Assembly (NCBI GenBank): GCA_044892505.1
Contig: CM097882.1
Coordinates: forward strand, 120,590,001 to 120,654,000
Length of the DNA stretch: 64,000 bases
From: Schmidtea nova
Lineage: Eukaryota
Direction: 5' to 3'
How positions within the stretch are numbered: the first letter of the stretch is position 1; every line of letters starts with the position of its first letter. Below are positions 19,504 to 62,450 of the stretch, piece after piece. The notes under the pieces were generated by a model. The model was given only the letters and a program-made list of their open reading frames with translations, was not told the origin of the DNA and made no database searches. Made by a program: the position numbers and the translations under genes.

Positions 19504-21841
19504 TGTTATTATTATTATTATGATTATTATTAATTTACAAAAAAAATTTTAATAACTCACAATGAATTGGCCAAATGGCCGCATAAAAAATATCAGAATT
19601 CTAAAATAAAATGAGTAGTGCCTAGTATTGCGGTATAAAGAATAGCCCCACTGTTGACCGAACACAGTAGGTCATATCCTTGAAATCAAACTCATTTTTT
19701 ATATACACAAAAAAAACCAAACTAATAACAATGGCATCAAATAATAATGAATATTTTAACTATAACAACAACGAAAACCAGCAAAATGAAAACAGAAATT
19801 ATTGCTCTAACCCCGAAAATTCCTTTACAGTCAGGTCAATAATTAACACAAAGCCAAATATCCCGAATTATTTTACAGACCAAAATGGCACACCCAAAAA
19901 TGTTAGAGTTTGCAAAATTAACTCTTACCCTTTTCGGAATTAAATCAACGAAAACCTTGTGTTCCCACATAATTGCTGCTCTACCTAGCAACATCTTAAA
20001 CGAAATAGCCGACAAGATCGACGAAATATAGAAAAACGACGACCCTTTCAATTTACTATACACAACACTAATGAACAGAAATAAAGTAAATAGAAGGGAA
20101 GTGCTAGAATCCTGCCTAAAAGACATTCAATTAGGAAACGACAAAGCTAGCGAATTTTTAAGGAACCTTAAAACAAAACTGGAATTCTTACAACCCAAAA
20201 TAACAAGCTCTGGTTCAAGTGAATTCATAAAAGACTTATTTATGAGGGCAATGCCACAAGAAATCAGACGCATTTTGGCCACAAGCAACTGCACAAAACT
20301 TGATACGATTGCCGAAATAGCCGAAAAAATAAACGACGAAATATTCCCAACAATCTGTAAAATATACAGAAAACAAAACACGGGACAAAACAAACGAAAA
20401 TGCAGATACCGACGTTATGGAACAATTACAATGGATTTATCTTGATTTAAGAACGGGAAATTGATAAAAAGACTAACTGGTGAAGTGTTACACGAAGCGG
20501 GACCAGTCCTTTAATCAAACCTTGGAAATAACACCAAAAGTTGAAGTAATATACTGTGCCAATGTAATGAATGTTTCCGAAGATGAATGTATATTTGAAC
20601 CAAATCAAAAATTAATAGAGAAGCAGGACGTACAAATGTGCGATGAAGTAGTGAAAGTTAAAGACAAACCGTACCAGTAAAATTAGCAAATTGCAGCACA
20701 AAATCTATTCAGATGAAACCCAAAACAGAGCTGGGAAAACTGACAAAAAAAAACAAGAAGAAGTACAAAAATTGCCCAAAAATATAAAAATTTATAAAGG
20801 ACTTCAAATTACAAGTTACGATTTAACAGATGAGCAAAAACAAGAATTCACTGCACTATTAAAGAGATAAAGAAACGTGTTCGCAAAACATGAATATGAT
20901 TTGGGACTCACTCAAGTGATTGAACATGAGATACCATTGCTGGACGAAACCCTTATAACATTGAGACCATATAGATTCAATATATTCATCAAGAGGAAAG
21001 TGATCGGCAACTCAAAGCAATGAAAGAATTCAAAATAATACGAGATAGCTCATCGCCATTCTCATCTTCAATCGTAGTAGTGAAAAAGAAAGATGGTGAT
21101 TTACGATTCTGTGTCGACTATCGAAAGTTAAACCAAGTCACAACGAAAGACACATATCCTATTCCAGTTCCGCAAGAAATGTTTGATCAAATGGGGGAGG
21201 TGCAATCCTTCACAGTTATTGATCTCAACAAAGGATATAATCAGTTCAAGGTCAAAGAAGAGGACAGAAGGAAAACTGCTTTTCAGCTGGTAAAGGTATG
21301 TACGAGCTTAATGTCTTACCATTTGGTTTAACGGGAGCACCGGCTACCTTTCAGAGAGGTATGAATTCCGTATTACGTGACATCCCACATGCACTAGTCA
21401 CTAGTCACTAGAGCAAAGTGCTCCAAAAAATATTTTTATCAAATTTGCTACGGTCGACTGTCAAATTTAATGAAGTTTGATACGGCCGACGGTCGATTAA
21501 TAAAATTGAAATTATTTTAAACACAATTAAAGTGTTTTGTGATTGACTCTTAAATTAATTGTAAATAACTGGGCTAACAACAGTATTACGTTACACTTCC
21601 TACATTAAGCTGCCAGTGAAAAAGCTAAGTTATTATTTACAGTTATTAGTAGTATAAATGTTGTTATGATGGTAATGATAACAATTATTATATTATTAGT
21701 ATTTTTAGTTATTATTATTATGGCGATTAATGTTATAATTATTACTAAAAATATTATTACTAGGATTATTGTTGTTATTATTATTGTCATTATTATTATT
21801 ATAATTATTATTAATTTTATATTATTATAAATATTATTATA

Positions 21842-21880
<39 letters not shown>

Positions 21881-22149
21881 GTTATTATTATTTTTATTTT
21901 TATGTTATTTTAATAGTAATAATAATTATTGTTGTTGTTATTATCATTATTAGTTATAAGTGTAATTATTAGTATTATTATTATTAATATTACTATTAAT
22001 ATTATTATTATTAATACTGTTATACTTACTATTGCTAATATTATTATCACTAGTATTATCACTGTAAGGAGTTCCAAAACTCCTTTTAAATTAAAAATAA
22101 TTTAATTAATTAATTTAACGAGTAACATTTTAGATATTTTAGATTAATA

Positions 22150-22229
<80 letters not shown>

Positions 22230-23448: not shown

Positions 23449-23507
<59 letters not shown>

Positions 23508-26500: not shown

Positions 26501-29500
26501 CAGCTGAAATTATTTTTGGAAGAAAGATTAATAGATTGCAATGGCATGTTAATAATAAAATTAATAGAGAAGACATTACGCAGAGATTAGAAGACAAAAG
26601 ACAGGAAAAGGAAGTCAAAACAAAAAGAGAATTAGAAATTGGAGAAAGAGTGTTAGTAAAAAACGAAATTCGAAATAAAGACCACGAGAGGTATGAAGGT
26701 CCATATACAGTAAAAAAACAAATTCATGAAAGAAGTTACTTATTAGAAGACAAGAATGGGAAGACTATAGTCAGAAATATTGAAAGGATTAAACATTTTA
26801 AAGAAGAGGGATGTAAGGAGTTCCAAAACTCCTTTTAAATTAAAAATAATTTAATTAATTAATTTAACGAGTAATATTTTAGATATTTTAGATTAATATA
26901 ATTTTATATATATATGACCAATATCCTCATTAGTATTAGAATTATAAATGTCTCAGTGTTTTAATATTCAGAATTAAACGAAGACATTTTGAAAGTGTGA
27001 TAAAAATTTAATAAATATTATGGAAGAAGAGTTGAATTTAATTGCTTCTAACAATCACTATTATAAATATTATTACTATTGGTCGCGCCCGCTTATTAAA
27101 ATATTTTTAAAATTAATTAAATAAAAATAAAATAGTAAAAGGCGGGCTTGATTGCTGTGAGAGATTTTGGAGCGAGCCTGGAAGCCGTTAGACGGTCTTA
27201 TCAATAACTCTATAATTAATTTGTTAAAATGTCATGTAAAGGAGAATCCATGCCTAGTATCAATGAATCAGACAATGAAGAAGAAGACAACTTATCTATC
27301 AGTGAGGAATTTTCCACTTCTGATTATTCTTCGTTAAATCGACTGAAAAATTCAACTCTCACTAAAACAGTCTGTGAGACGATGGAACATAAAGAGGAAA
27401 TCTTCAACAAAGCATCAACATTAAAATCTATACATTGTGTACAAAATGAAAATGATACCGACAATTCCAATGATAGCAATTCAAATAATAGCGGGCTTTC
27501 ACGAGAATCATTAGAAAGTGATAAAGAAGATTACACTAGTCACATTTGTTCTGATAATTTCCACTATCAATGCAACAGTAGTACTTTGGAAAATCAATCA
27601 ACAATAATTGAGACCGAACATTCAGTTATAAGCGACATAATTCTATTAAATGAATTACAGGAATTTTCTGATCAAATAAAAAAACTTTAATTAATGAATT
27701 TATTGAAGATTAATATCGGTTGATTTTTAAAAAAACTTTTCAGAATAATTGATTTGTTTGTCTGTGTCAGGGAATTTTTAAATTATTTGGGCGAACTTTG
27801 AAAATTTAATTATTTTGCTTAGTGTGGAATTTTGGATTTGTTTTACTGTATTAATTGTTTATTATTTAGTGGCAGATTTAACTTTTAATTTAAATAATTG
27901 CTGAGTGGGATTTCGATTTATAGAATTGTTTCGGTTTCGGTTCTTTTTGAATTGATGAAAAAATTATCGAGTTTTTGGAATTAATTGAATTATTTTGGGT
28001 ATGTTGATTTAAAAAAGGGAATTTGAGTTTCGAATTCGTTTAATGAATTTTTGGGAAGAATGGAATTTTGAATTTTGCTTTCGTTTCGTGTACATTTGGA
28101 AATAAACTTTGGAATTTGATTTATTGTAATTGGTGGATTTTGATTTAAATTAAATGGAATTTCAATTTTTCGACTGCATTTAAAACGATTGCGTTGGATG
28201 GATTACTTTCTGTTGGTGTTCGAGATAATGATTGTGGCGTAGTTGCTACACAAAGAAAAGTCCCAGATAAAATGAAGGAAAAGAGTTCAGCTACAAGATT
28301 ATTTACCATAACTGAAAGTACTGGTTGCGTTAGGACCGGAATGATTCATGATTGCGGATCGCAAGTATGCCGTGCACAAGTGGAAGCCACGATTTAAATG
28401 CGAAATGTCCTGTGACATGATTTGTCGATGTTCTGCCGAAATTAATCAATTGTACACTCAATCAGCTGCAATGATGCCATTAGGCTGTTCAATGATCGCA
28501 TTTTCTTGTGATAAGGAGATGGATAAGCCACTGTTATTCAAAACCGATCCCAGTGGATTTGTAGCTGGTCGTCGAGCTGTTGCGGTCGGTGGAAAACAGT
28601 TGGAAACTAAAAGCTATAAGGAAAAGAAGCTTCGTAAAAATAAAGAAATCAATCGGAGCTGGATGCGACGAACCAACTGTCTTTATTATTATTAATAGTG
28701 TTACTACTAATACTACATCATCATTATTATACTTATGTCATTGTTATTACTATCATTGTAGTTACTATTATTATTATCCTTATTATTACAATTATTGGTG
28801 ATATTATCATCACCATTATTATTATATGATCATTGTCAGGATTTATGATAGAATATATTTATATATGTAGATTCGAGGACGAATCTTAAAAAAAGAGGGG
28901 AGATATGTTGGGGTTGTTAAAATTTACAGAAAATAAATATTAAATAGCACAATTCAAAAAAAATACAAAAAATTGGAAAAATAATAATTAATGTGAAAAA
29001 ATTAATTAAAAATTAAAAAAAATCAAAATAAAGTTTGAGCGGGGGAAACTGGTATGGGAGGATGCCAAATGATGAGACGAATTTTAATATGGGTATATAA
29101 AAATAAAAAAAGGTCCCCAGAAAGAAATATTTAGGAAATACAAATTAATTAAAATAATTAATTACTCTATAGGAAACCCGAGCTACTTGGGAACCCGAGC
29201 TAATGGGAAACTCGAGCTAGTAGGAAACCCGAGCGATATGGGAAACCCGGGGCATCAGTAAATTGATTAATTGAAATTAATGGAAAAATTGAAGGGTGCC
29301 CCGGGGAAAGAAGCCGCAAACCCATTTAGCGGCAACTCCTAAATTAATTTTGTAATTGACAGATCCATTAAGGTGTGACAGGAACAATCAAAAAAAAACA
29401 CTATAAAAGGCAAGGCAAAATTTCAGTACTCGCCAGTTGGTCTAAGCCAGTTTGTCGAGGCCAGTTGGTCGAAGAAAAATCTAAAAGAGTTAAACGAGGA

Positions 29501-38500: not shown

Positions 38501-41500
38501 CTGATTTATTATATAAAATTAAATTTTTTAATAAATAAAACTCCGAAAACAACTCAATAGTCACGCCTATTAGAAGTACGACATTCCAACCTAATATTTA
38601 ATCATTATTTTCTCTTATTTTTGCCATTGATTTTTTCATTTCTATTTCAGAAATTTAAATTTTTTAAAAAGACTAGATAAAATATTTTATTATTTAAACG
38701 TACACGAAATTTCGTCACATACTTTTTGGAAAAAAAATTGATCTAGTCTTTAAAAAATAAAAAAAATTATTAAGGAGACATAATTCTATGTATTCGTAAT
38801 TAAATACAGTGAAGCGTTTGGGATGTCAAAAGTCATATACACCTAATTCTGTTTTTACAAGATAGATACGTTTCTAAAAAAATCGTGTAAAAAAAAAGAT
38901 ATTGGCTGAATGGAAAAATAGTATTGAAAAAATATTGAAAATGGTGTTAAAACAAAGCAATTCGTGTAAAAAGAGAGAAAAAAAATCTTTTTAATTCGTG
39001 TTAAATCAAATTCGTGTAAAAACAATTCGTGTAAAAACAGAATTAGGTGTATATCGAAATGAATCTCAAGCTGTTAATTTGTAAATGATTTCTAAAGAAT
39101 ACTGTATCAAAATTATCCCACTGCATTATAAGATATACAAATATTTGATGGGCACTTTTGTAGTGACTTCACATTCAGAATATTATAATTTTGTTGTTTA
39201 AATAAGTTGGACAATGAGTAAAATTAGTAATCGTGTTAGATAACAGACTTATCGAGTGAATTTGCTGAAGTTTAGTGCAGAGGTTCTCAACCTGTGTATC
39301 GTGAAAATTGCCGAAGATATTTTTTTCTCAAATAGCTGACGGAAATTTATTTTGTTGAAATTGCTTTTAAAATACTAATGTTTATATTTTTTTATAAAGT
39401 ATAGTTTAACTCAGTGTTTCCCAAAGTGTGTTCCGCGGAACCCTGGGGTTCCGTGGACTGATAGCAGGGGTTCCGTGGACTGATAGCAGGGGTTCCGTGG
39501 ACTGATAGCAGGGGTTCCGCGAACTTTTTGTAAATAAATAATTTATAAAAAAAGATTTATAAATAAAGATTAATAAATAATATTCTTATTATACTTCTAC
39601 GAAAACGAAATATCGTAATAGATTGAATTGCTCGGCAGATATGCGCATCCAATTATCAACAATAAAACCAGATATAACAAGGATTTGCAAGGAAAAAAAC
39701 AACAACACTGTTCATACTAATAACATTCATAAGTTTAACTTTTTTTATATTAATCAACAATCGCATGAATTTATTTTATTATTTGTATTATTCTTATTTT
39801 TTTAATAAATACTATAATTTTCTGTATACTATAGCTCTTATTAATTTTCCCGATATTAAAATTTTATGATTTTTGTAAATAGGGTTCCATCAAAAATTTG
39901 AAATCAAAAAGGGTGTCGCGGTGAAAAAACTTTGGGAAATGTTGGTTTAACTAGATTTATTCAAAAACAGTAACTGTTAAAATAATATTAGAATCAATTC
40001 TTGTTTCAATAAAATTTGTTTTGGAAAGTCGCTAGAATAAGTTAACCTTTTCCGAGCGTTAAGGCTCGAAAGTGACTAAAATGCTTCTTTTAGACTTGGG
40101 AGCGATATTCTTGCTTATAAGGCTCGTTAAAGACTAGAATCTTACGTCCGCCTTATGGATACGTGTTCATATGCTTCTTATTGCCCTTCCTAAATAATTT
40201 AATAGCCGCTCACAAAAGGTTAAGTTTATCCACTAGATAAAAAATTGAAAAAATGTGGTCTAATGGAATAATAATTATTTATGCATTGCAATTGATATTT
40301 TATCACTAAATATAGTTATATTAGTGTTTCTTGATCCACACTCTGACACAACGAAAAGAATATGGACAATAAAGCTTTTAATTACAATTAAATTGAAATG
40401 AATGAAAAATATGATCATGTATTACCTCGCGTAGATAAGTTAGACACATTTATACTCTTGATAGGGTTCCATTGATTCTCATGCAGATGAACGAATAAAA
40501 CCAAATCCTAGCATAATGTAATTGTAGCATATGGTGGTTCAAACCGCAATAAGATAGTTTCTCTGGAGTCCCTGTAATTGCCTGTATGATCAAGTATTTT
40601 GGTTTGACTGCCCAGCAGCAACAATAGTTTTATTATTAAATATTATCCACTAATAAAAATTTATGTTTTTTTTATTCAGGTAAAGGGATCAAACATGAAT
40701 TTACTGGGAGAAACTCAAGAAGAAGACCGCAAACTAATTGCTGAGCTGATATGGTCAAAAATGCAAATATTTTGTCGTCCAAATATTCCGTTGGTTCTTT
40801 TAATATTGCTAACTCATCATGAATGTTCCATCATTTTAGTAAAGCCGAAAGCTTACATGTGATGAATCGTCAAAATGAATCTCCAGTCAACCAATCAAAT
40901 CCTCCTGCTAGCGCATCAACAACCAATATTACTTCTCAGATTGGTAGCAGACTGCCTTCACAAATGTCAACATCGGGAATATCGCATGATTATACTGTTG
41001 CGCCGTCTACATCGGCAACTTTTACACAGCAACCATTGACAACAATGGCAACTCGCAGTCAGAATTTCACAGATAATATTAGTAAATCCAATATTGGTCA
41101 CACATCAAGCTTGCCAGCTGCACCGCCCATTACTGCAACATCCAACTCTATGAGTTCAATCAGTGGAATGAATCCGAGTGAGCCAATGAGGTAGATATAA
41201 TTATATAATCACTGTTAATGAATAAATTGTGAATGCAATCCCATAAATAGGTCTAGGGATAATAACCTGTTTCAAACATTTAACAAATACGTGGCGCGCC
41301 CAATAAGTCGTGAGACTAAAATAGAAAGACTTAAGATATCAACACAAAACTTTGTATTTAGAACAAGCATGGGAAATAGGCATCATTTCTCAAAATAATT
41401 TCCTTCTGCACTGACACAATTTTCCCAGCGAATAACGAGGTTTTCGAAGGCATTTTTGAAGAATTCTGGAGGCTTTTCTCCCAGAAAACTCTCCACGGCT

Positions 41501-43171
41501 GCTCTCAAATCATGTTTGTTGGCAAACACCTGGTACCGCAGATGCTTCTTAAGATGGTTAAACAGGAAAAAATCGGAGGGAGCTAAATCGGGGCTGTATG
41601 GTGGATGGGGAAGCAAATTCAGCCCGCAACGCTCAATTTTGGCCATGGAAACGCTGATGGTGTGGATGGGAGCATTACCGTGTAAAAAATAGAGATCACA
41701 CACTCTGCTCTTGCGTCGTGCCTTCCTTGCTTGCTGCACGATGTTAGAGTAGTAAGAACTATTGATCTTCACGCCGGATTCAGCAAAGTCAGTCAGAATA
41801 ATGCCATTGGCGTCCCAAAACACCGTCAGCATGAGAGACTTTCGGTGGCAAGTTGAGGACCACATTTTCAGTGAGCTGCTTTCTCCTGGCAGTTTCCATT
41901 CTTGATACTCTCATTTAGATTCAGGGACATAAACGGTCAACGGTGTCTCGTCCACAGTGATGATATTATCAATGAAACGGTCTCCAACATTGGTCCTGAT
42001 CTGCAGGTTCTCTAAGCAGCATTCCAAGCGTCGTTGTCACATTTCCACCGTTAAGAAGCGTGGCATAAAACGGGAACATAGTTTTCGAATACCACTTTCA
42101 GTGAGGGGAGTATGCACAGTGCCTCTGCTCACATTTAGACGGGTTGTGAGCTCTCTCGTCGTTATTTTTCTCTCGTTTTGCACAATTGTCTGCAGCTTTT
42201 GCGTTATTTTTTCATCAATTTCTGAGGGTCTTCCAGATCTTTCTTCGTCCGCCACGGAGGTTCTACCACTCTGAAAGTAATTGAACCAATGATAAATTGT
42301 TGCTGTGGATGGGCACTCTTGTTGGTAAACAGCTTTCAGTTCAGAAAGAACCTCTTCTCTATATTTGCCTTTCAGAAAGAGAAAGCGAATAACGCTTCGG
42401 TATTGAATAGTTTCCAGAAGCATTTTTCGAATGTTCGCAAAAATATACTTAAACAATAATGGATTATTAAAACAAAATACATTTTCTTTACCTATATATG
42501 TTGAAAATTTAAATATGTCTGTATCAATTTTTTTACTATTATTATTTCTATATTAGTCTCACGACTTATTGGGCGCACCACGTATATTCGGTTCGTACGA
42601 ATTTTTACAAATAAATCTGACGGATACGAGGTATGACTATATTTTGCATAGCAACCAATGCATAGTTTAAATCTGTGTTTCATAACCTAGAGCTTACAGT
42701 GGGTCGGAAAATATGATTTTTTATGCGGACCAGTTAAATATTAATTTCAATTCCCCAGACTTCAGCAAAATATAGGATAGGACCAAACGCGTCTCACTAA
42801 AGTAACTTTACTCGAAGTACGTATATCATAAAAGGTTGATTCTAATAAATATCTGCCCAACATAAATTTATTGGCTATTGTGGATTTGAAAACTTTTTAT
42901 TTTATATACCTTTAAAAGCTGAATAAAGTTTCCTATTAGATTGCCTGATGGTCACCAAGGAGGACAAAATAATGCAAGTAACGCAACCGGATACATTTCA
43001 AACATGAACATGAGATCCACTGGACCACCAAATAAAATAGGCAGTCAGCCAAACCGACCAAACATTCCGCCTCGTCAAACATCTCTCAAGTCGAATGCCA
43101 GTGTCGATGATGGGGATGACACGATGAAGAATTTGAGAAAAACTTTCGCAGGCATTTTTGGAGACATGTAG
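5812..43171 (+). CDS. SYN: synapsin, 3' part (10 exons; 5' exons not found in window)
   Basis: Exons 5812-5903, 5952-6102, 6766-6855, 34872-34934, 36146-36288, 36333-36407, 36453-36555, 40680-40789, 40840-41190, 42940-43171. All introns are GT-AG with matching phases. The joined translation gives the synapsin C domain (AEFSE..., [62 protein letters not shown]) and the invertebrate E-domain end [17 protein letters not shown]. Confidence 0.95.
5952..6102 (+). CDS. SYN: synapsin exon
   Basis: [11 protein letters not shown]...[25 protein letters not shown]|gtgagt; 48-nt upstream intron. Confidence 0.93.
6766..6855 (+). CDS. SYN: synapsin exon
   Basis: ttttaacag|[30 protein letters not shown]|gtaagt; 90 nt, phase 0/0. 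Confidence 0.93.
7150..7742. repeat. diverged LTR-like fragment related to the LTR of Gypsy element A
   Basis: Core GCATTCACCCCAGCTGTCC...CCGGAGTCTCTTCTGGGCTC resembles the reverse complement of the element A LTR core (~11990-12070) and copies at ~31100, ~54300 and ~56730. Ends approximate. Confidence 0.5.
7985..9141 (+). mobile_element. TRIM-like miniature LTR retroelement with minisatellite interior
   Basis: Near-identical direct repeats 7985-8155 and 8968-9141; the 3' copy has TGTAG...CTACA ends. PBS-like TGGTGTCAGAA at 8158; G-tract PPT at 8955-8963; no coding interior. Confidence 0.85.
8180..8925. repeat. complex minisatellite (AAGCACCACGCACTCC / AATCACTCAAAGC variant units)
   Basis: Directly visible tandem variants with higher-order repeats; the ORF at 8157-8357 is its translation. 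Confidence 0.95.
9332..10016 (+). pseudogene. decayed type-I membrane glycoprotein-like ORF (env/accessory-like)
   Basis: ORF pieces 9357-9617 and 9645-9833 and their in-frame continuation carry N-glycosylation sequons (NET, NQT, NVT, NQS, NKT), a 26-aa hydrophobic helix [26 protein letters not shown] and a short tail. Interrupted by stops and frameshifts. Confidence 0.45.
10413..11861 (+). pseudogene. decayed ~480-codon ORF containing a DEDDh 3'-5' exonuclease (REXO4/ISG20-like)
   Basis: ATG at 10413 is in frame with ORFs at 10779, 11415 and 11628, with internal stops; ORF 11041-11535 is frameshifted. Motifs ILFIDAEYG (ExoI), HGITE, LIGHDL (ExoII), RDLA and [14 protein letters not shown] (ExoIII). 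Confidence 0.75.
11886..12731 (-). repeat. 3' LTR of element A
   Basis: Direct repeat of 17213-18078; contains AAATATGACTTG tandem units and a TTGGCTTACTATAGC...GCTATAGCAAG hairpin. Confidence 0.97.
12950..16091 (-). pseudogene. pol of element A (protease, RT, RNase H, integrase) with frameshifts and stops
   Basis: FLVDSG protease (15417-16091); RT with [23 protein letters not shown] and YLDD (14964-15368); RNase H with TDCS, DRELLA and TDHKPL (14067-14744); integrase with [12 protein letters not shown] and IISDQ (13560-13943). Low-coordinate end approximate. Confidence 0.93.
16092..17025 (-). pseudogene. gag of element A (frameshifted)
   Basis: ORFs 16723-17025 and 16295-16897 lie between the PBS and the protease; homologous to the fragment at 19730-20395. 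Confidence 0.8.
17213..18078 (-). repeat. 5' LTR of element A
   Basis: Direct repeat of 11886-12731; adjacent to the PBS. Confidence 0.97.
18184..18462. repeat. diverged tandem duplication, ~140-bp unit x2
   Basis: AATAAAATTTAGAA...GGGTTACACTTCC...GCAGCGATTGAAAGT.GCCAG...TATAAATATTATA occurs at 18184 and 18331. Confidence 0.85.
19630..20395 (+). pseudogene. gag fragment of an element-A-related Gypsy
   Basis: ORF 20071 ([36 protein letters not shown]) is nearly identical to the element A gag; the upstream leader is also homologous. Confidence 0.85.
20460..21400 (+). pseudogene. Gypsy pol (RT) fragment from a different family
   Basis: [31 protein letters not shown] and [10 protein letters not shown], then a frameshift to [13 protein letters not shown]; truncated before YxDD. 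Confidence 0.85.
21640..22062. repeat. degenerate (ATT)n microsatellite
   Basis: Directly visible; continues at 27054-27079 beyond the element B insertion. Confidence 0.95.
22343..23380 (+). pseudogene. gag of element B
   Basis: Broken ORFs at 22343-22618 and 22781-23065, with zinc-knuckle motifs at ~22985-23140. Confidence 0.8.
23724..26811 (+). pseudogene. pol of element B
   Basis: LLDTGA; [13 protein letters not shown] and CLDFRQLN; VYLDDILI; [15 protein letters not shown]; DTDAS and TDHKA; HLLLCHAG; integrase MDIYGP and IIDHYSK. Several stops and frameshifts. Confidence 0.93.
27184..27223 (+). other. genomic copy of a planarian-type spliced leader (3' end slightly degraded)
   Basis: GCCGTTAGACGGTCTTATCAATAACTCTATAATTAATTTG: 38 of the first 39 nt match 50997-51035. 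Not followed by GT, so not an SL RNA gene. Confidence 0.8.
27229..27690 (+). CDS. acidic Ser/Asn-rich low-complexity ORF (cargo 1 of copy 1; probably a truncated host mRNA 5' part)
   Basis: 153-aa ORF starting a few nt after the SL; no recognisable domain; stop codon at the junction with the T-rich linker. Confidence 0.4.
   Translation: MSCKGESMPSINESDNEEEDNLSISEEFSTSDYSSLNRLKNSTLTKTVCETMEHKEEIFNKASTLKSIHCVQNENDTDNSNDSNSNNSGLSRESLESDKEDYTSHICSDNFHYQCNSSTLENQSTIIETEHSVISDIILLNELQEFSDQIKKL
28176..28640 (+). pseudogene. PSMA6: intronless proteasome subunit alpha type-6 fragment (cargo 2 of copy 1)
   Basis: [32 protein letters not shown]...[16 protein letters not shown], then after a frameshift [17 protein letters not shown]...FKTDPSGF...GGKQLE...EKKLRK. 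Collinear with PSMA6 ([32 protein letters not shown]...YTQNAEMRPLGCCMI...KCDPAGY...EKKVKK, as recalled). Truncated at both ends. Confidence 0.9.
28865..29688 (+). repeat. PPT plus LTR remnant, family L2
   Basis: AGATTCGAGGACGAATCT hairpin, PPT AAAGAGGGGAGATA, then TGTTGGGG; internal GGAAACCCGAGCTA tandem units; runs into Ns. Confidence 0.7.
29985..30315 (+). repeat. second PPT plus LTR remnant, family L2
   Basis: AGATTCGAGGTCGAATCT, AAAGGGGAGAGGTA, then TGTTGGG, with GGAAACCCGAGCTA units. Confidence 0.65.
30655..31324. repeat. diverged LTR-like fragment (element A LTR-related)
   Basis: Hairpin AAATTCCTATAGTAA...TTACTATAGGAATTT and core GCACCCCAGCTG...GACTCGGCTGGGTTC. Ends approximate. Confidence 0.5.
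31511..32100 (+). repeat. LTR family L2, 3' part
   Basis: Aligns with 29110-29688 (CCCCAGAAAGAAATA, GGAAACCCGAG, TGTGTTGGGTCTAATTT, GAGTCAGA); ends TAACCCAACA. Confidence 0.75.
32634..34002 (+). mobile_element. Tigger/pogo DNA transposon, internally deleted
   Basis: TIRs CAGTCAAACTCGCTTATAAC / GTTATAACCGAGTCTGACTG (18/20); TA flanks. Broken DDE_1 transposase ([19 protein letters not shown]-terminal ORF 33485-33865). Confidence 0.92.
34872..34934 (+). CDS. SYN: synapsin exon
   Basis: cttcatttag|[21 protein letters not shown]|gtgagc; 63 nt, phase 0/0. Confidence 0.88.
35494..35793. mobile_element. hAT-type MITE
   Basis: TIR CAGTGGCGTACCTAGGG / CCCTAGTTACGCCTCTG; imperfect 8-bp TSD AATATAAT / AATTTAAG. 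Confidence 0.75.
36146..36288 (+). CDS. SYN: synapsin exon
   Basis: [47 protein letters not shown](L). Confidence 0.95.
36333..36407 (+). CDS. SYN: synapsin exon
   Basis: [24 protein letters not shown](K); flanked by 44-nt and 45-nt introns. Confidence 0.95.
36453..36555 (+). CDS. SYN: synapsin exon
   Basis: [34 protein letters not shown]|gttagt. Confidence 0.95.
37354..38594 (-). mobile_element. decayed mariner transposon
   Basis: ORF 38086-38394 has the mariner HTH region ([24 protein letters not shown]); broken catalytic domain downstream. Degenerate TIRs (TTAGGTTGGAA...TGTCGTA) with TA flanks. Confidence 0.85.
38840..39049. mobile_element. Tc1/mariner-type MITE
   Basis: Perfect 20-bp TIR CACCTAATTCTGTTTTTACA; TA flanks. 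Confidence 0.85.
39412..39944. mobile_element. hAT-type MITE
   Basis: TIR CAGTGTTTCCCAAA / TTTGGGAAATGTTG; perfect 8-bp TSD GTTTAACT; internal GGACTGATAGCAGGGGTTCCGT x3. Confidence 0.9.
40046..40219. mobile_element. piggyBac-type MITE
   Basis: TTAA on both sides; TIR CCTTTTCCGAGCG / CGCTCACAAAAGG (11/13). Confidence 0.7.
40680..40789 (+). CDS. SYN: synapsin exon
   Basis: [36 protein letters not shown](P); followed by a 50-nt intron with a CTAAC branch point. Confidence 0.9.
40840..41190 (+). CDS. SYN: synapsin exon (Ser/Pro/Thr-rich linker)
   Basis: ttttag|...EPM(R)|gtagat; phases match both neighbouring exons. Confidence 0.85.
41290..42582 (-). mobile_element. mariner transposon (1293 bp), full length, inactivated; in a synapsin intron
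   Basis: 30-bp TIR CGTGG(C/T)GCGCCCAATAAGTCGTGAGACTAA; TA TSD. Transposase 41383-42456 is in one frame with two internal TGA stops; motifs VDET, LHGNAP (second catalytic D replaced by G) and [13 protein letters not shown]. Confidence 0.97.
42940..43171 (+). CDS. SYN: synapsin last coding exon (E domain)
   Basis: cctattag|...[18 protein letters not shown]. Confidence 0.95.
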
Positions 43172-46300: not shown

Positions 46301-49161
46301 TTATTCAAATTTGGATTTCTTATTTTTGTTTGAATCTCCATTATTATTTTCGTTTTTCCGTTTCTTTTTCTCAACCTTAACAACTTGTTCGACTGGAATA
46401 TCTGACACTGCATCCTTTTTGGCAGATTTCTTTTTATCAGCCTTGAAACTTTGCTTTCCTTTCTCGATTGCTACTTCTGACAATGATTCTTTTTTGATGG
46501 ATTTCTTTTTATCAGTATTCAAAATTTGGATTTCTTGCTTTATTGATTCTTTAGTACTCTCATTCTGCCTTTTTATTTGTTGTCCTTTCGCTTTCCTCCC
46601 AGTCTTTCTTGTTTTCCTCCTCTTCCTATAGGTCTTTTTGTAATCTTGTTCCTCGGCGGTCTCAGGCTGTTCCTTGACTTTCCTATGCTTGACAAATGAT
46701 CCCGTGTGGAGTTTTGGTTTCGGTCGGGCATCTGATGGCAAATGGTCACGAATACGATCGAAACACGCAACAAAGAAACCATTGCAAAGGTCATAACTGG
46801 GATTTGTGCGAATGCATTCTTTGAATAGCTTCTTACCACGGGTCATCCAGCTGTCCATCCAAATTGGACGCAGCTGGAACTCATCTCCAAATTTCTCGAC
46901 AATTTCCTCAACGACCGCCTCGTTCTCCTCGAGCGTCACGGAACAGGTCGAATAAACCACCCGCTTAACATTCGGGAACGAGAGGGCGTGACTGAGTAAC
47001 ATCGCCTGGAAATTGCGTAGGGATTGCAGGCGCTGTTCGTCAACCCGACTGTTATTGTTGCGTTCGGCCATTCGGTCCACCTGACGCATGATACCCGAGC
47101 CTGAGCAGCTGGGATCAAGGCAGATGTACCCGACGTTTGCATAACGCGGATCAGTCGGATCGACTTTCGTGAAGTCTTCCAATTGAGCACTAACGGTAAC
47201 AGATTGGGTTATTGCGTGGGGCTCACGGTAAATCGACAAGGCATGCTCGAGCATTTTGAATCGGGTTTCATCACGGTCAAATGCAAACAACGAGATCGGT
47301 TTGGATGGCTTTTTTTTCTGTGATAAAATCGAGAGCAGGTGAGTTGTTTTGTTTCCAGGAGCAGCGCAAGCATCAATGACGTCCATATCGGTGTCGGGAT
47401 CAAGCACCGCAGCAGGGATGCAGCTAGCCTTGTCCTGTATGAGCACCTTGCGTGCTCGCACTAATTTGTCCGTGTGTAGCACCGCCGAACTGTGGAACAC
47501 CAACAGATCCTCGTGTAAATGATAATCCGGCATAAAATCTCCTTCATTCAGTTCTTTTAACCATTCGAGAAACCTTGGAATATAATAAGAATTAATTTAT
47601 AGAATTTTTGAATTTAAAATTAATAGATTTAATAATTATTATCGATTCAATAATTGTAATTAATTTAACGTTAAAATATTTGACTTTGATATTTTCTGAA
47701 AAAGGAGTCGATTGTTTTACCGAAATTTATTTATTCGAGAAACCTATGGAAACAATTATAATCAATTTTATTTATTTTCAATTCTTCATTTTAAAGGAAC
47801 AGAAGAAAATTTATTTTTTCTAAGCACAAATTTTCGACACTGCCATTTTGAAAAAAAAAGACCTTAACGAAAAATAAGCCGGAGTTAAGTTACTTGTTCC
47901 AAGAGGTAGCTATCCTGGGATCAAGTTCTGCTGATGGATATAAGATAAATAGCCCTACGAGGAATCGGGTCACAAGAAATCCGAAAAGAAGATTGCATAT
48001 CAGTAGTTTAATAAATTTAGATTTCCGTGAATGATAAATAAAATATACATTGGAGAGGTCCTAACGCAAAAAAAATTTTTTTATGGAAATATTGGTATAA
48101 GATTTGGTATTATTTTCGGCGTAATAAATTCGTGACAATGCATTAATTAGTGATGTTAAGGGAAAATTTGATATATTACATTTAACATGAAAATAGCAAT
48201 AAAAATAATAATTCTGTAATCAATATCGATTTTTAATCGAAAATCAAAATAATAAAGTGAATAATTGTCATTATAAGCAATCGATAATGTTGATTATAAA
48301 GAATCTATAAATTAATATATCAATAATAAAAATTAATTTAATTATTGACGTGTTAAAAAAATCAATAATTGATTAAATATTCTTTTTAAATAAAATGTTT
48401 AATAAATTTTATAAATCAATAAAGCAGTAAAAAATAATATTCATAAATAATTTTAAAAATTTTGCTATTTTAGCAATTTTATTAATAAATCAAAGCAATT
48501 CATAAACTAATCAAATTCGACCATAATAGCTTACTGATTATATTTCACAGATTTGTCCTCATAATCCAACAGGTTGTACCCTTCATTAACAAAATGTTCA
48601 ATTGCTGCATGTCGTGTGATCAATAACAAATTGATTCTCACGTAAACTGGTAATTCAATGCTCTTATCAGTAGGCCGATAATGATTAAGGACTTCTTCAA
48701 TTGATTGTAACTTGTTCTCACTGATCAATTCATCAAGGATATCCTTGAATATTCTCATCTTGCTCACCAATGGGCAACCGGAGAGGTTGGATTTTGCTTG
48801 CCCGAATAGCATGTCATATATTTGCACCTTTATTCGACAGTTCTCACATCCGATTCCTCCACTGTTACACTCTCTTGTGTCACTGGTCTGCTGCTTTCTA
48901 CTAGTTTCTATTTGACCAAGTTTAGACCTATGGAGAATCTCAGTAATTATAGTTTTGTTCTTGATAGCTTCAGCTACGATTGCCAGTAATTTCTTCAAAT
49001 CCTATTTAACAAGAATAAAATTATATTAATTTGTACAAATTTGCATTTATTACACTTGTGAAATGAGATTGGAATAGTCCATTTTTTAGATTGCAAACGC
49101 CTGATGCTACTTTGCAATACAAAATTCCAGCTTCTTTATATAAATTAACTTCTGAAGGCAT
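46301..49161 (-). CDS. NSUN5: 28S rRNA cytosine-C5 methyltransferase NSUN5 (3 exons)
   Basis: Exons 49054-49161, 48535-49001 and 46301-47573, joined by GT-AG introns with consistent phases. Motifs LYKEAG, KKLLAIVAE, YDMLFG, LPVYVRIN, LIQDKASC, IDACAAPGNKT, LDPSCSGSG, YSTCS..EENE and GFFVACF; Lys-rich tail. Confidence 0.93.
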
Positions 49162-50175: not shown

Positions 50176-50490
50176 ACTATTTTTCTGTTTAATGCTCTTA
50201 TGTGTTATTGTGAGCTATGAATTTAGCTCTTTTCGTGATAATTTAATTTTTGACTTATTAAAACAAGATTTTGATTTCAATTCTACCAGCTCAACATTAT
50301 ACTTGCAATAATCGCCGTAGTAACCTTGCAACTATTTTTCTGTTTAATGCTCTTATGTATTATTGTGAGCTATGAATTTAGCTCTTTTCGTGATAATTTA
50401 ATTTTTGACTTATTAAAACAAGATTTTGATTTCAATTCTACCAGCTCAACATTATACTTGCAATAATCGCCGTAGTAACCTTGCAACTAT
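50176..50490. repeat. near-perfect 155-bp tandem duplication
   Basis: The unit starting ACTATTTTTCTGTTTAATGC occurs at 50176 and 50331; one substitution seen. Confidence 0.95.
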
Positions 50491-50996
50491 GGTGTAATTA
50501 CTAGTTACTCGCCACAGAGTAATGTTGGTATTGTAATTAATGGTTGAGCGCTATTTCAGAAATATAATTGACTGAGTATTTACGAGTTCAAAAACTGTCA
50601 ATATAAGATTTGTGCTCATTTTTACTTTATGGTTTCTTTATTTTTAAATACTTAATCATGAGCTATATTTGCTGAAAAAATCAAATTTGATGCTAATTTA
50701 GCAAAATATTACTGAAAAAATTATTGAAAAAATTCTTTATTATCAATAAGAAAATTATTAAATATTTCAATAGTAATAAATATTTTATTTTCAAACCATA
50801 CTTCAAACTCGTACTAATAAAGAAATAATAATAATGTTGATTGTTAATGCTATATTTTTATTATTGTTATTGTTATTGTTATTATTGTCATTATTATTAT
50901 TGGTCGCGCCCGCTCTTAAAATATTTTTAAAAATTAATTAAGTAATAATTATTTGGGTGCTTGATCGCTGTGAGAGATTGTGGAGCGAGCCTGGAA

Positions 50997-51038
50997 GCCG
51001 TTAGACGGTCTTATCAATATCTCTATAATTAATTTATG
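50997..51038 (+). other. genomic copy of a planarian-type spliced leader (42 nt, ending in ATG)
   Basis: GCCGTTAGACGGTCTTATCAATATCTCTATAATTAATTTATG; 35/42 identical to the Schmidtea SL-1 as I recall it. Its terminal ATG opens the ERI1-like ORF. Confidence 0.85.
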
Positions 51039-51840
51039 ATAATGAATCAGTATCCTAGCACATCTCAATCAAAAACTGATCAAACGAATACTGCTAATGT
51101 TAAATATAACAACAGCAAACAATATTCTTTCAACACAAATCGGATTAATAAAATGCCAGATGAACAATTAGTGGGAATTTTAAATTATCACGGATTGAAT
51201 GCAAAAGGTAGCCCAGAAATATTACGAAAACGTCTGAAAGAATATATGAAAATTCAAATGAACCCTGACAATAGTGAAATTTCCAGTCAAAACGATTCAA
51301 ATATATATATGCATACTTTCTCATAATTGACTTTGAAGCGACTTGTGATGAAATAAATGGTTTGAATTTCCAACACGAAATCATCGAGTTCCCCATCATA
51401 CTCTATGATGTTATTTTGAAGCGAAAAGTTGATGTTTTTCATGCCTACTCTAAGCCATTTATTAATCCAGCTCTCTCGAGACAAAGCAAAATCATTTCCT
51501 GATGTCCTAACAGAAGTCGAACAATGGCTCAATAAACATCACATGGTTGCGAAATCATTTGCTGTTGTCTGTGACGGCAATGCTGATATGGCAAAATTTA
51601 TGAGAATTCAATGTGATTAGTAATATTGAGTTTCCTTCTTGGTGTAGACAATGGATTAATATCATGAAGAGTTTCCGTCAGTTCTATACGGTTTCTGTCG
51701 ATGTCAAGTTGAACATGCAGAAAATGTTGAGCAGTTAAGGATTGGAATTCGAGGGTCGACAGCACAGTGGACTGAATGACGCTGAGAACATTTTACAAAT
51801 TACTGAAACGATGATGAATGACTGGGTTGCTTTTAAGTGA
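51036..51840 (+). pseudogene. ERI1: intronless ERI1 (SAP domain plus DEDDh exonuclease) copy with frameshifts (cargo 1 of copy 2)
   Basis: SAP domain INKMPDEQLVGILNYHGLNAKGSPEILRKRLKEY; exonuclease motifs IIDFEATC, HEIIEFP, SFPDVL, VCDGNADMAKF, WINI and GRQHSGLNDAENI. Three frameshifts, one internal deletion and one in-frame TAA. Confidence 0.93.
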
Positions 51841-52256
51841 ATTTAAAAATTTTGGAATTTAACTTGGAATTGAATGAATTATTAATGGGATTCTTTAAAA
51901 AACATTTTCGGATTATTTTAATGTAATTATTAGGAATTTTAATTTAAAACTTTAAGTTAATTTGGATACGAATTTTGTTTATTAGGAATTTTGATTAAAA
52001 ACATTTGGTTTAAATATGTTGTTGTTTATCTAAATTAATTTAATGGCTTGGTAAAATTAACTTTTGAATTGTTTTATTGCTGAGTAACGGTATGAATGAT
52101 AATCTCGTGGAGATATTTGATTTAAAAACTTTAATTTTAATCTCGTGGAGATGTTTGATTTAAAGACTTTGATTTGGAAATGTTTTGTAATGAACTTTGA
52201 ATTGGATTTAAATTGGAATAAATTATTCTCGTCTCGTTGTTAATGGTCTTGATGAA

Positions 52257-52907
52257 ATGTTCAAAAATCTTTTGAATAATATCTCAGTTGTTGGATACAG
52301 GGATCTTTGGAAATTGATTGTCGATCAGATTTCCGTTATCAATGATCAAAAGGTTCCCGATGAGTTGTCGTTGTTGGTGATGGAATTGTTTTTCAAACAC
52401 GCTAATACAAAATCACTATTGACTTGCGTTAAACTGATTGTAAACCACGTGAAACGGTTGATTCGAGAGGACGCATCAAATAGATTGGTGGAAATTGCAA
52501 GGTTAATTGTGAATAAATTGCCGTTTTCAACGGATATTCACGAGATTTTGCGGGCTTTTATTTGTTGCAAAGGAATGGGAATTGAAGGGAAATTTCAACT
52601 GGTCGAGCAATATATCAATGATGAGCATTTAGAAATGATACTGGAAAATTCACTCAACAATTATCTAACTAAATTTATCAATGAAACCTGGTTGCAATCT
52701 GATACAAATAATTTCTATTTGACTCTAAAAGAAATGATAAAATTGATAATGAAAGAGTTTCCAATAGCCAATCAGAGTCAATGGAATAAAAATATTGGAG
52801 AAAAGAATTTCAACTTGTCTATGATTAAATCTCGCGACCTCAGTCCAAAAAACAAGAAGAATAAAGAAAGCAATAGGAGCTGGATGCGCCGATCCAATTA
52901 TTATTAG
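52257..52907 (+). CDS. unknown alpha-helical protein ORF (cargo 2 of copy 2), fused in frame to the element 3' arm
   Basis: Uninterrupted 216-aa ORF with Leu/Ile-rich helical periodicity; the last ~15 aa come from the shared 3' arm and microsatellite. Confidence 0.45.
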   Translation: MFKNLLNNISVVGYRDLWKLIVDQISVINDQKVPDELSLLVMELFFKHANTKSLLTCVKLIVNHVKRLIREDASNRLVEIARLIVNKLPFSTDIHEILRAFICCKGMGIEGKFQLVEQYINDEHLEMILENSLNNYLTKFINETWLQSDTNNFYLTLKEMIKLIMKEFPIANQSQWNKNIGEKNFNLSMIKSRDLSPKNKKNKESNRSWMRRSNYY

Positions 52908-52944
52908 TAATAGTAGTAGTAGTAGTAGTAGTATTATTATTATG

Positions 52945-53818
52945 AATGTGTTTGATTGGTAAGGTATATAATATGTATGTTCAATGCTATGTATGCTGTG
53001 TATAGTAAGAAATGTTGTAGTGCCCGAGAGAGTTTCCTATTAATTGTTGGGACACTCGGGTAGTTTGCTTATACTTGCGTGCTTGTATTGCCACAAAACG
53101 ATACAAGTTTAGGATAAGAAAAATATATAAACAACAAATTATAATAAATTTTTATTACGTTAATAGACAAAACTACGAAAAGTTACTTTATAATTCTTCG
53201 ACCTTTGCGTTCTGGAGGTATTATGATATTAAGAGACAATTGAATCGGCTTAATATTTTGAGTTTGACTAATTGTCCGTAATCAATGGACTGTTGATATA
53301 TTTGTGTTATTGCTGAGAGAACTTTAATTAGAAACAATAATATTATTATTCGTTTAAATTGTTGTTTAAGTTTTCCTTTGGAATTTTCTAGATATCTACT
53401 TTTCAATTCTTATCGGCTGTTTAATATTTTGTTTTTGACTAATTATCTGGATAACTTCTTTAACTTTTTTTGACAAAATAGTTGATAATAAATTTGAATA
53501 ATAATTATCTGGATAACTTCTTTAACTTTTCTTTGACAATAAATTTGATAATAAATTTGGTGATAATTCTATATAATTTTAGGCTTTCCAGAGTTATCTT
53601 TTATACTTATACAGATTTCATTTTCAATTTTCTAATATTAAAAAATCAATTTAATTAATTTGTGATTTGGCTTACTATAGCATTTGCCATAGTAAGCCAA
53701 ATTAAAATTTTAAATTAAAATCATCATAAAAATAATAATTTCCCAGCATGCAAATAACAGGGGGGTCCTCGGTGACCGCGAGGGCACCGGCCATAATGAT
53801 GACGGCGCTAACAACATA
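52945..53818. repeat. solo LTR-like copy related to the element A LTR
   Basis: Shares the core GTGCCCGAGAGAGTTTCC and the hairpin ATTTGTGATTTGGCTTACTATAGCATTTGCCATAGTAAGCCAAATT with the element A LTRs; ends CTAACAACA; no TSD found. Confidence 0.65.
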
Positions 53819-58387: not shown

Positions 58388-59512
58388 TCAAACGAGAGGA
58401 TAAACTGGCATCATCGCAACTTTGCAAGCATTTATGTTCCTGGGTAATCGGAAATATCCTTTTTCACCCCAAAATGTGCTCCAGCTATTCTTAATTATCC
58501 AGTATGGTATCCCGGTGGTTTCATCTGTCCCATATCCCACCAGTAATACGGCATGATTAAGCTCTAGTTTGTCGCATTCTTCTTCGTGGAAAATGCCTTT
58601 CGTATATCTCTTTAACGATTTAGTTGCAGATATTGCCACTGAAATTGGCCCAATTGTTACTAGAGCTTCTTTCAGTTTCTCTTCATCCCTTTCTGGCATT
58701 TGAACAAATCCAGTATCAGTTGCTACAACTTTGCTTTTGGCAAAACTGCATTTAGGATTCGGTTCTAATGTCTGACCGGATTCATAAGGGTAACTATTCT
58801 CACCCTCAATGCCTCCATTTGACTTAATATATGACAACGCATCTTGAACAAATCCACCATCACATCCAGCATCATTACCATCGCAATCTACAATCTGTTG
58901 TTCTGATAAGCTGATCAATCTTCCAGTTTTTCTCCAGATCTGGCCCTCTAACGTGCCTGTAGTAGCAAATGCATAGCATGAACCACACAATCCTTGATTT
59001 TTTACTTCGGTGACTGCACCTGCCTTGCGCCAGTCGAATGAATCTGGAAGGTCAATAGTCAAACCGGATGACAGATACGATGAGCCTGTGATGTTTGATA
59101 TTTTCAATTTGGTCAGTTGCGATAACTCTTCACTGCTCTGAAAATGTTTTTGTTATTGTATACTGCTAAATAAACAAAAAGTTACCCAATCACTCAAATG
59201 GTTAATTCCAATCTCGTATAATTTTTGGCCGTTTTTAAAAAGTTCATTGTGATGGTTGACCTCAAGTAAAGATGAGATAAAATTTAAAAACCTCGAATTC
59301 TCTTCATGCTGGGAACTATATGATTTATTATAACGTTGCTTAAAGCTTTGGAAATCTTCATCGTAACGAGATAAAAGAGATATCATATTTTCTAGTTCTA
59401 ACGAGCCGGAAAGGCCAGTATTGGGGACCGATTCATGATGGTCATGGACAGTTCTGGCTTGTGTGCTCACAGCAAATAACGCACAGATCAAGATTGGAAC
59501 TATCGAAATCAT
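58388..59512 (-). CDS. CTSL: cathepsin L-like papain-family cysteine protease (2 exons, 358 aa)
   Basis: Exons 59186-59512 and 58388-59137 with a 48-nt phase-0 GT-AG intron. Signal peptide and I29 prodomain; QGLCGSCYAF, LNHAVLLVGYG and WIIKNSW catalytic motifs. Confidence 0.95.
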
Positions 59513-62315: not shown

Positions 62316-62450
62316 CAGTGTTGTCCAAACTGTGTGTCGCGGCACACTGGTGTGCCGTGGTGGGTGCCCAGGTGTGCCGTGGTGGGTGCCCAGGTGTGCC
62401 GTGGTGGGTGCCCAGGTGTGCCGTGGCTCAAAAAAGTTTGGACAACACTG
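62316..62450. mobile_element. 135-bp hAT-type MITE
   Basis: Perfect TIR CAGTGTTGTCCAAACT; perfect 8-bp TSD ATGTATAC; internal GGTGTGCCGTGGTGGGTGCCCA tandem units. Confidence 0.92.

Follow-up and report, generated by a model that had tools for sequence, protein, structure and literature searches.

Two spliced-leader-headed units with conserved ends, a shared linker and different mRNA-like cargo in Schmidtea nova

Results

Layout and conserved ends of the two units

In a 64,000-nucleotide (nt) stretch of Schmidtea nova DNA (contig CM097882.1, positions 120,590,001 to 120,654,000 of the forward strand; hereafter the window, 30.8% G+C), two units on the same strand and 23.8 kb apart carry a genomic copy of a spliced leader (SL) between a conserved arm and protein-coding sequence. 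Copy 1 occupies 27080-28675 (1596 bp) and copy 2 occupies 50901-52896 (1996 bp), and all runs of N in the window lie outside both. Each unit consists of a 5' arm of about 100 bp, a 42-nt SL, a first cargo segment (slot 1), a linker, a second cargo segment (slot 2) and a 37-bp 3' arm (Table 1). These coordinates and this layout were first proposed in a first-pass annotation of the same DNA, and our alignments agree with them.

BLAST-significant similarity between the units is confined to two blocks, one 5' and one 3'. The 5' block is 87% identical over 155 columns (27069-27222 vs. 50890-51035, E = 1e-43), and the 3' block is 81% identical over 64 columns. The first 15 nt of the 5' arm are nearly invariant (14/15 identical), the AT-rich middle contains insertions and deletions between the copies, and the last 38 nt, immediately before the SL, match at 36 of 38 positions. 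Arm and SL are joined with no bases between them, and a 24-mer spanning this junction is identical in copies 1 and 2. The 3' arms, which form the last 37 nt of the units, are identical at 33 of 37 positions, and the last base of their AATAAA lies 31 nt before the unit end in both copies. Homology between the copies ends exactly at TGG on the 5' side and at CCA on the 3' side. Both units start with TG and end with CA, a feature absent from the first-pass annotation.

Several readings of the arms themselves were tried and dropped. A GC-closed hairpin was predicted in both arms, but its z-scores were only -0.1 to -1.8, and a stable RNA structure was rejected. ARAGORN detected no tRNA anywhere in the window. 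A known RNA family, ribozyme or small RNA was likewise rejected, as Rfam and ARAGORN returned zero matches; no tRNA, 7SL, 5S or other small-RNA head was detected (ARAGORN; Rfam gave nothing above chance). A conserved coding tail was another candidate identity for the 3' arm. The arm lies in the same frame in both copies and two of its four differences are synonymous, but the sites are far too few to be meaningful. The C-terminal tail that the arm encodes in a 216-amino-acid (aa) open reading frame (ORF) of copy 2 had no match in the protein search.

The 42-mer is a flatworm spliced leader

Flatworm mRNAs acquire an SL by trans-splicing. The first 23 nt of the SL are identical in copies 1 and 2, and a start codon lies 0-3 nt after the SL in both units. 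When an 18-nt SL core was compared with metagenome contigs, it matched two AT-rich transcript-like sequences, L002 (Ga0247628_1005999) and L004 (Ga0247628_1006774), in addition to two chance bacterial matches. In both transcript-like contigs the core lies two bases from the contig start, an ATG at nt ~40-44 opens an ORF of 457-466 aa, and a short 3' untranslated region (UTR) follows; a poly(A) run closes L004. Since the SL core heads such contigs, the 42-mer is, judged by its sequence, a real flatworm SL that marks mRNA 5' ends. The SLs of L002 and L004 agree with that of the window over the first ~20 nt and differ afterwards, so the contigs come from another flatworm species.

The features of an SL RNA gene are missing from the units. 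A splice donor, an Sm site and a short intron are absent after the SL, where coding sequence follows instead, and Sm-like motifs in the linkers are not enriched over shuffles (P = 0.15 and P = 0.34). Rfam found no SL RNA, and no intact SL RNA gene is present in the window.

A diverged linker is shared by both units

The first-pass annotation had stated that the units share only their ends, and in this it was mistaken. Both linkers contain 5% C and 45-47% T and are the longest such stretches in the window. GGAATTT and TTGATTT-type motifs are common to both at 20-40 times expectation, and by the combined density of GGAATTT, TGATTTA and AATTTTG the linkers rank first in the window on either strand. 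A colinear global alignment of linker against linker gave z = 4.2 and beat all 300 dinucleotide shuffles. By its sequence, the linker is a third, diverged homologous module of the backbone. It is far more diverged than the arms, as one would expect if the element required nothing but its ends in cis. The family backbone is made up of arm, SL, linker and arm, ~0.6 kb in all, with two variable slots. An ordinary 3' UTR was rejected as an identity for the linker, given that UTRs of the related flatworm are short with 11-12% C and that one linker aligns with the other. We likewise rejected the linkers as arrays of Sm sites or SL RNA introns, the motif being no commoner than in shuffles. The conserved ends and the conserved linker, compared at the sequence level, support the view that the two units belong to one family.

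The slots contain intron-free, sense-oriented coding segments

All four cargo segments (~460-800 nt) are intron-free and read in the same sense as the SL and the AATAAA, whereas the NSUN5 gene nearby consists of several exons.

Slot 1 of copy 2 gave a weak SAP match and RNase_T exonuclease matches in Pfam and matched the ERI1 chains 1w0h and 4l8r in PDB. Its coding sequence is scattered over three frames by a minimum of three frameshifts and contains one or more in-frame stops. The intronless ERI1 proposed earlier is confirmed as an intron-free ERI1-like cDNA; as a gene, its reading frame indicates that it is a 5'-complete but decayed pseudogene. Slot 2 of copy 2 contains the 216-aa ORF, previously described as unknown. 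A whole-library HMMER search found two relatives of it. By tblastn, 52239-52829 aligned without gaps to residues 261-457 of P0001 (735 aa) at 70% identity over 197 residues, and the slot aligned to residues 204-397 of P0002 (1295 aa) at 38% identity; P0002 bears Pfam UTP20_N. What had been called an unknown ORF is a UTP20-like internal fragment that reads on through 30 nt into the 3' arm.

Slot 1 of copy 1 holds a 153-aa ORF with no recognisable relatives in Pfam and protein searches. Exact look-ups of the 216-aa ORF, the 153-aa ORF and P0001 in the protein collection gave zero records. Slot 2 of copy 1 covers roughly residues 30-182 of the ~246 residues of PSMA6 with one frameshift, as judged from Pfam Proteasome matches in two frames and from PSMA6 chains in PDB (E = 3e-21). 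The PSMA6 homology extends over the A-rich beginning of the copy 1 3' arm, and this overlap suggests microhomology at the join between the two. The proposal that the units package host mRNAs goes too far for slot 2, which has only internal coding fragments (UTP20-like and PSMA6).

Because the cargo is in sense orientation, lacks introns and, in slot 1, begins exactly at the SL, its sequence supports a derivation from mRNA. The multi-exon structure of the NSUN5-type gene indicates that genes of this region do have introns. The earlier suggestion that an SL fused to coding sequence points to an RNA intermediate fits these observations, given an SL that heads mRNA-like contigs. A poly(A) tail is absent at cargo ends and at unit ends, and the ~100 bp directly upstream of the SL are conserved and do not belong to an mRNA. 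Mature SL-bearing mRNAs have no such upstream arm, so the arm cannot come from an mRNA of this kind or from a plain retrocopy. No reverse transcriptase (RT) or transposase was found inside the units, as the first-pass annotation had also reported.

Both units interrupt ATT microsatellites

Tandem Repeats Finder (TRF) and the sequence itself place both units within ATT-type microsatellite, as proposed earlier; for copy 1 this holds once a nested long terminal repeat (LTR) element at 22064-27053 is discounted. Perfect (ATT) runs of at least four units make up 0.5% of the window. No homology between the two loci was found beyond the microsatellite tracts, and the possibility that the units are parts of a larger shared element was dropped on this ground. 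The sharp bounds and unrelated flanks indicate that the units are separate insertions. The 5 nt flanking copy 1 are ACTAT before and ACTGT after (4/5 match); those of copy 2 are ATTAT on both sides, but they lie inside the repeat and are hence uninformative.

The termini of the units are complementary with two one-base bulges (9 matches, 2 gaps), and both variable 3' positions fall at the bulges. Compared with GC-rich 15-mers from the window, this anchored complementarity has P ~0.005; in duplex energy, however, the termini do not surpass composition-matched shuffles. The terminal complementarity is weak evidence.

As observations on the microsatellites of the window, perfect runs of at least four units are strongly strand-biased (345 bases of ATT on the + strand vs. 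36 bases of AAT), and several transposable element insertions lie in or beside the ATT tracts.

Only two copies are present in the window

The window was searched with short patterns that had N at the positions differing between copies, and with two-row profile hidden Markov models of the arms. No third copy of any arm or of the SL was found in the 64 kb by exact, 3-mismatch or profile scans, and the same scans on shuffled sequence gave zero matches. Viral contigs had no match to the SL or the 5' arm, and the 3' arm had one chance match in a phage contig of 63% GC. A single giant element with the two units as its LTRs was also rejected, as the units differ in their interiors and are separated by the multi-exon NSUN5 gene.

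Table 1. Positions of the modules of both units and of their flanks in the window
Feature	Position	Strand	Description
Copy 1 original upstream flank	21684..22059		376-bp imperfect (ATT)n, split from the unit by a nested LTR element
Copy 1 5' arm	27080..27183	+	Defined by alignment to copy 2
Copy 1 genomic SL	27184..27225	+	39/42 identical to copy 2; last three bases differ
Copy 1 slot 1	27229..27690	+	Intact 153-aa ORF, acidic, Ser-rich
Copy 1 linker	27691..28170	+	Composition and motifs as in the copy 2 linker
Copy 1 slot 2	28171..28641 (approximate bounds)	+	PSMA6 (proteasome subunit alpha type-6) internal fragment
Copy 1 3' arm	28639..28675	+	Defined by pattern searches and alignment to copy 2
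Copy 1 downstream flank	28683..28825		Degenerate ATT microsatellite; the ATT run starts 8 non-repeat bases after the unit
Copy 2 upstream flank	50835..50900		Imperfect ATT/GTT microsatellite; TRF rows 50835-50902
Copy 2 5' arm	50901..50996	+	Starts TGGTCGCG, then an AT-rich stretch closed by a GC stem, then the conserved 38-nt block
Copy 2 genomic SL	50997..51038	+	42 nt, ATG at its end
Copy 2 slot 1	51036..51840	+	ERI1-like cDNA, SAP domain and 3'-5' exonuclease, from the ATG of the SL
Copy 2 linker	51841..52238	+	C-poor, T-rich, GGAATTT/TTGATTT motifs, 38-bp tandem duplication
Copy 2 slot 2	52239..52829	+	UTP20-like internal coding fragment, open, ungapped
Copy 2 stretch between UTP20-like homology and 3' arm	52830..52859	+	30 nt, partly A-rich
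Copy 2 3' arm	52860..52896	+	Begins AATAAA, ends ...GATCCA
Copy 2 downstream flank	52897..52942		ATT/TAG microsatellite, starts directly after the unit

Neighbouring elements and genes

The LTR retrotransposon at 22064-27053 (+) looks complete and is inserted within the ATT tract, with 26 bp between it and copy 1 downstream. Its LTRs of ~240-300 bp are 93-98% alike in aligned blocks, with an expanded (TA)n in the 5' LTR. The element has TG...CA ends, a 5-bp duplication (ATCAC) and, past the 5' LTR, a TGG-starting sequence that resembles a primer-binding site (PBS); its pol ORF encodes RNase H and integrase zinc-finger domains. A second LTR retrotransposon (11886-18078, pol on the - strand) has LTRs of ~850 bp that are 95% alike, a 5-bp duplication (GTGAT), and ORFs with protease, RT, RNase H and integrase domains. 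Both of these bona fide LTR elements have TGT...ACA ends and 5-bp duplications. A 100-bp LTR piece of the second element recurs at 53638-53739, ~0.7 kb downstream of copy 2. Directly past the ATT tract of copy 1, the region 28853-32081 starts with a purine run followed by TGTTG and contains N-interrupted direct repeats ~1.1-2.4 kb apart (28853-28912 with 29970-30029; 29115-29685 with 31514-32081). The region probably represents one more LTR-type element or several in tandem.

The host gene between the units is a multi-exon gene for an NSUN5-type RNA methyltransferase (46301-48998, - strand) with N-terminal, ferredoxin-like and RsmB/F domains. Remnants of DDE transposases are found at 41383-42456 (-; mariner/Mos1-like, with a helix-turn-helix and a partial DDE domain) and at 212-778 (-; pogo-like DDE_1), and neither the mariner-like nor the pogo-like remnant showed a link to the arms of the units. 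A long uninterrupted ORF at 58388-59107 (-) has a papain-family (cathepsin L-like) protease domain. Among repeats, a 155-bp unit is duplicated at 99% identity at 50176-50490, just upstream of copy 2; the tandem array at 8175-8946 is a C/A-rich satellite with periods of 49-55 bp and longer; and 39445-39519 and 62349-62426 are perfect triplications of 22-bp G+C-rich units that differ from each other.

Discussion

A tentative reading as LTR-like remnants

We tentatively read the units as solo LTRs, or LTR-like remnants, of a retroelement lineage into which host mRNAs may have been swapped by template switching. With the same reserve, and at somewhat less than an even chance, we regard them as old, independently inserted and now dead members of one family that depended on reverse transcription. 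An LTR anatomy is suggested by the TG...CA ends, the possible 5-bp target duplication, the AATAAA near the end and the putatively non-transcribed arm directly before the SL. An RNA-derived interior joined to an upstream arm that the RNA lacks is what would be expected at a U3/R boundary, and LTR-type replication is the established means by which sequence upstream of the transcript start can pass through an RNA stage. The 5-bp duplications of both bona fide LTR elements of the window may also be cited for this reading, as may the insertion of one of them (22064-27053) so close to copy 1 in its ATT tract; SL-like loci in LTR and LINE repeats of parasitic flatworms (see below) are a precedent. 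The first-pass annotation had concluded that the units resemble no known class; this was too strong, since the TG...CA ends match those of LTRs, and the AATAAA, the possible 5-bp duplication and the putatively non-transcribed arm before the SL would fit an LTR.

Under an LTR-like organisation, the 5' arm would correspond to U3, which would lie outside the transcript from the 5' LTR and be restored by copying of the RNA's 3' end. The SL would be the start of the transcript (R), so that the element RNA would resemble a trans-spliced host mRNA, and the AATAAA near the end would be the R/U5 poly(A) signal. As every trans-spliced host mRNA bears the same 42 nt, an RT copying a host mRNA to its 5' end could switch by homology onto the element's own SL. 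A switch at this position would leave slot 1 with a host cDNA whose 5' end is complete. Slot 2 would receive internal parts of other mRNAs, reached by non-homologous switches where A-rich sequence gives microhomology to the first bases of the 3' arm. An integrase-type enzyme would then insert the unit, which would give TG...CA ends, a 5-bp target duplication and a preference for (ATT)n. We infer the U3/R assignment, the template switch, the integrase and a full-length partner from this anatomy.

A number of observations weigh against the LTR-like reading. The window holds two copies only, and in it no LTR pair, PBS, polypurine tract or gag-pol is associated with either unit; the earlier remark that the units have no LTRs holds as far as an LTR pair is concerned, but each unit may itself be LTR-like. 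An R of 1.5-1.9 kb containing whole host cDNAs would be unusual. The termini read TGG...CCA, vs. TGT...ACA in both true LTR families of the window. The duplication at copy 2 lies inside a repeat and that at copy 1 matches at only four of five positions, the terminal pairing energy does not exceed that of composition-matched shuffles (P = 0.08 and P = 0.19), and a TATA-like motif ~30 nt before the SL is absent. Finally, the two cargo segments of copy 2 have decayed unequally, ERI1 next to the SL much more than the UTP20-like fragment. If decay were uniform, the at least four disruptions in ~800 nt would predict ~3 in the 650-nt ORF, and the chance of finding none is ~0.04. This contrast hints at cargo of different ages, or at chance, and it is a poor fit to a version of the model in which the newest cargo lies next to the SL.

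A more far-reaching form of the LTR-like reading, which we consider unlikely, is that the SL was built into the start of the element's transcript as a universal homology, behind which any trans-spliced host mRNA could be exchanged in the course of reverse transcription. The family would then be a standing, modular, two-slot system of host-message capture and reinsertion, with transcripts that mimic trans-spliced mRNAs.

Alternative explanations

Of the alternatives, a LINE-dependent (long interspersed nuclear element), SINE-like (short interspersed nuclear element) or chimeric retroposon fares best, and we hold it to be rather unlikely. A non-LTR RT specific for (ATT)n/(TAA)n would recognise the 3' arm and prime in the microsatellite; the copied RNA would start at TGG, and the host mRNA pieces would have been gained by template jumping. 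Microsatellite-specific LINEs exist. Both units lie in ATT-type tracts that account, as perfect repeats, for <1% of the window, the repeat begins directly at the 3' end of copy 2, and the conserved 3' arm could be what the enzyme recognises. Template jumping would also account for a sense-oriented mosaic of mRNA pieces. However, 8 non-repeat bases separate the end of copy 1 from its ATT run, the units lack a poly(A) tail, and neither copy is truncated at its 5' end. The small-RNA head of a SINE (tRNA, 7SL, 5S or other) was not found in the units, and a LINE RT did not turn up in the scanned ORFs of the window. The arm would further have to be transcribed from some promoter, with the SL internal to the RNA.

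It is improbable, in our judgement, that the units are damaged SL RNA gene loci (promoter, SL exon and downstream sequence) into which trans-spliced cDNAs were inserted, either by way of homology to the SL exon or by a site-specific retrotransposition machinery, with no mobile family involved. The identical arm/SL junction and the promoter-like conservation of the 38 nt upstream (36/38) speak for such loci, as does cargo that begins exactly at the 3' end of the SL, and SL RNA genes are generally known to be targeted by site-specific LINEs in trypanosomes and nematodes. Against this, the splice donor, Sm site and short intron that should follow the SL are missing, Sm-like motifs occur no more often than in shuffles, and Rfam gave zero SL RNA matches. 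SL RNA gene loci would also leave unexplained both the homologous linker between two different cargo pieces in each unit and the sharp TG...CA bounds inside a microsatellite.

Still less probable is a non-autonomous cut-and-paste DNA transposon with short imperfect terminal inverted repeats (TIRs), a Pack-type cDNA cargo and a TTA/ATT target. Such an element would have complementary termini, as seen here (TGG-TCG-CGC, with the variable 3' positions at bulges), and if the ends are read as TTGG...CCAA the flanks become TTA/TTA for copy 2 and CTA/CTG for copy 1; DDE transposase remnants are also present in the window. The complementarity is, however, short and gapped, with an energy that shuffles equal, and the mariner-like and pogo-like remnants are unlinked to the arms. 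Pack-type captures are genomic, intron-bearing and in either orientation, whereas the segments here are spliced, in sense and in one case started by the SL.

Least likely of all are non-mobile units, that is, two host loci or a local duplication sharing ends by gene conversion or chance, or an assembly artefact: such an origin would suit two copies only, on the same strand and 23.8 kb apart, with no partner element seen in the window, but it is opposed by the unrelated flanks, by three conserved modules in the same order with unrelated cargo between them, by decayed genes that argue against a host function, by the interruption of a microsatellite with matching or nearly matching 5-nt flanks in both cases, and by units that N runs leave untouched.

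If the family is real and numerous, it would represent a new route for copying and moving host genes in flatworms, and the SL would be a recombination handle besides an mRNA tag. Such a route would bear on the origin of retrogenes in trans-splicing animals and on retroelement RNA disguised as host mRNA, and would explain some of the many unclassified planarian repeats. SL-headed intronless copies are also an annotation hazard, being mistakable for genes or for SL RNA loci. If the units are just two odd solo LTRs with transduced cDNA, they are a modest curiosity.

Comparison with known systems

We found no description in the literature of an arm-SL-linker-arm backbone with exchangeable host cDNA. 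A plain retrocopy was rejected as a match on account of the ~100 bp of conserved non-mRNA sequence before the SL and the lack of an A tail, and a Helitron (5' TC, 3' CTRR, 3' hairpin) on account of the TGG/CCA ends and the lack of a conserved hairpin in the 3' arm. Pack-MULE and other Pack-type elements resemble the units in being non-autonomous, with conserved ends and variable host-gene cargo. They differ in their long TIRs, 9-10-bp duplications and genomic fragments in either orientation, none of which is present here; terminal complementarity spans at most 11 nt, and the flanks of copy 1 mismatch over 8-10 bp.

Chimeras made by LINE template switching (U6-L1, fungal MINE) are, as is generally known, sense mosaics of unrelated RNAs, and in this they are like the units. 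Those of the U6-L1 and MINE type are joined at the 5' end of one template. Each such chimera arises singly and has a poly(A) tail and a 3' part from a LINE or an mRNA, unlike members of a family with conserved ends and a conserved middle module. The LINEs of SL genes (SLACS, CZAR and CRE of trypanosomatids; NeSL-1 of nematodes) are known to have flanks of SL-gene sequence and SL-started transcripts, as the units would. They encode RT and endonuclease themselves and interrupt the SL exon, while the units carry host cDNA and a whole SL with no SL RNA intron.

Retroviruses and LTR retrotransposons transduce host mRNA by copy-choice recombination, in which RT switches between RNAs. Like the units, their products contain sense, spliced host sequence within TG...CA ends and short target duplications; unlike in the units, the captured sequence normally lies in the internal region and not in the LTR. 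To our knowledge, no known transduction case uses a host SL as the switch homology or as the start of R.

A DNA-encoded SL has been described in two other settings. In dinoflagellates, SL-tagged retrogenes are intronless copies headed by a DNA-encoded SL, taken to indicate an mRNA intermediate (PMC5585692, PMC12014239); unlike the units, they are ordinary dispersed retrocopies without shared arms, a linker or a second slot. In parasitic flatworms, 597 SL-like loci were found in repeats, mostly LTR and LINE elements, and were interpreted as retroelement RNA that acquired an SL before it integrated (PMC12582326). These loci are like the units in having a genomic SL within repeated elements, but their leaders are partial and no architecture was described for them. 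The units of S. nova have a full-length SL, a conserved 100-bp arm before it and host coding sequence after it, and their cargo varies from copy to copy.

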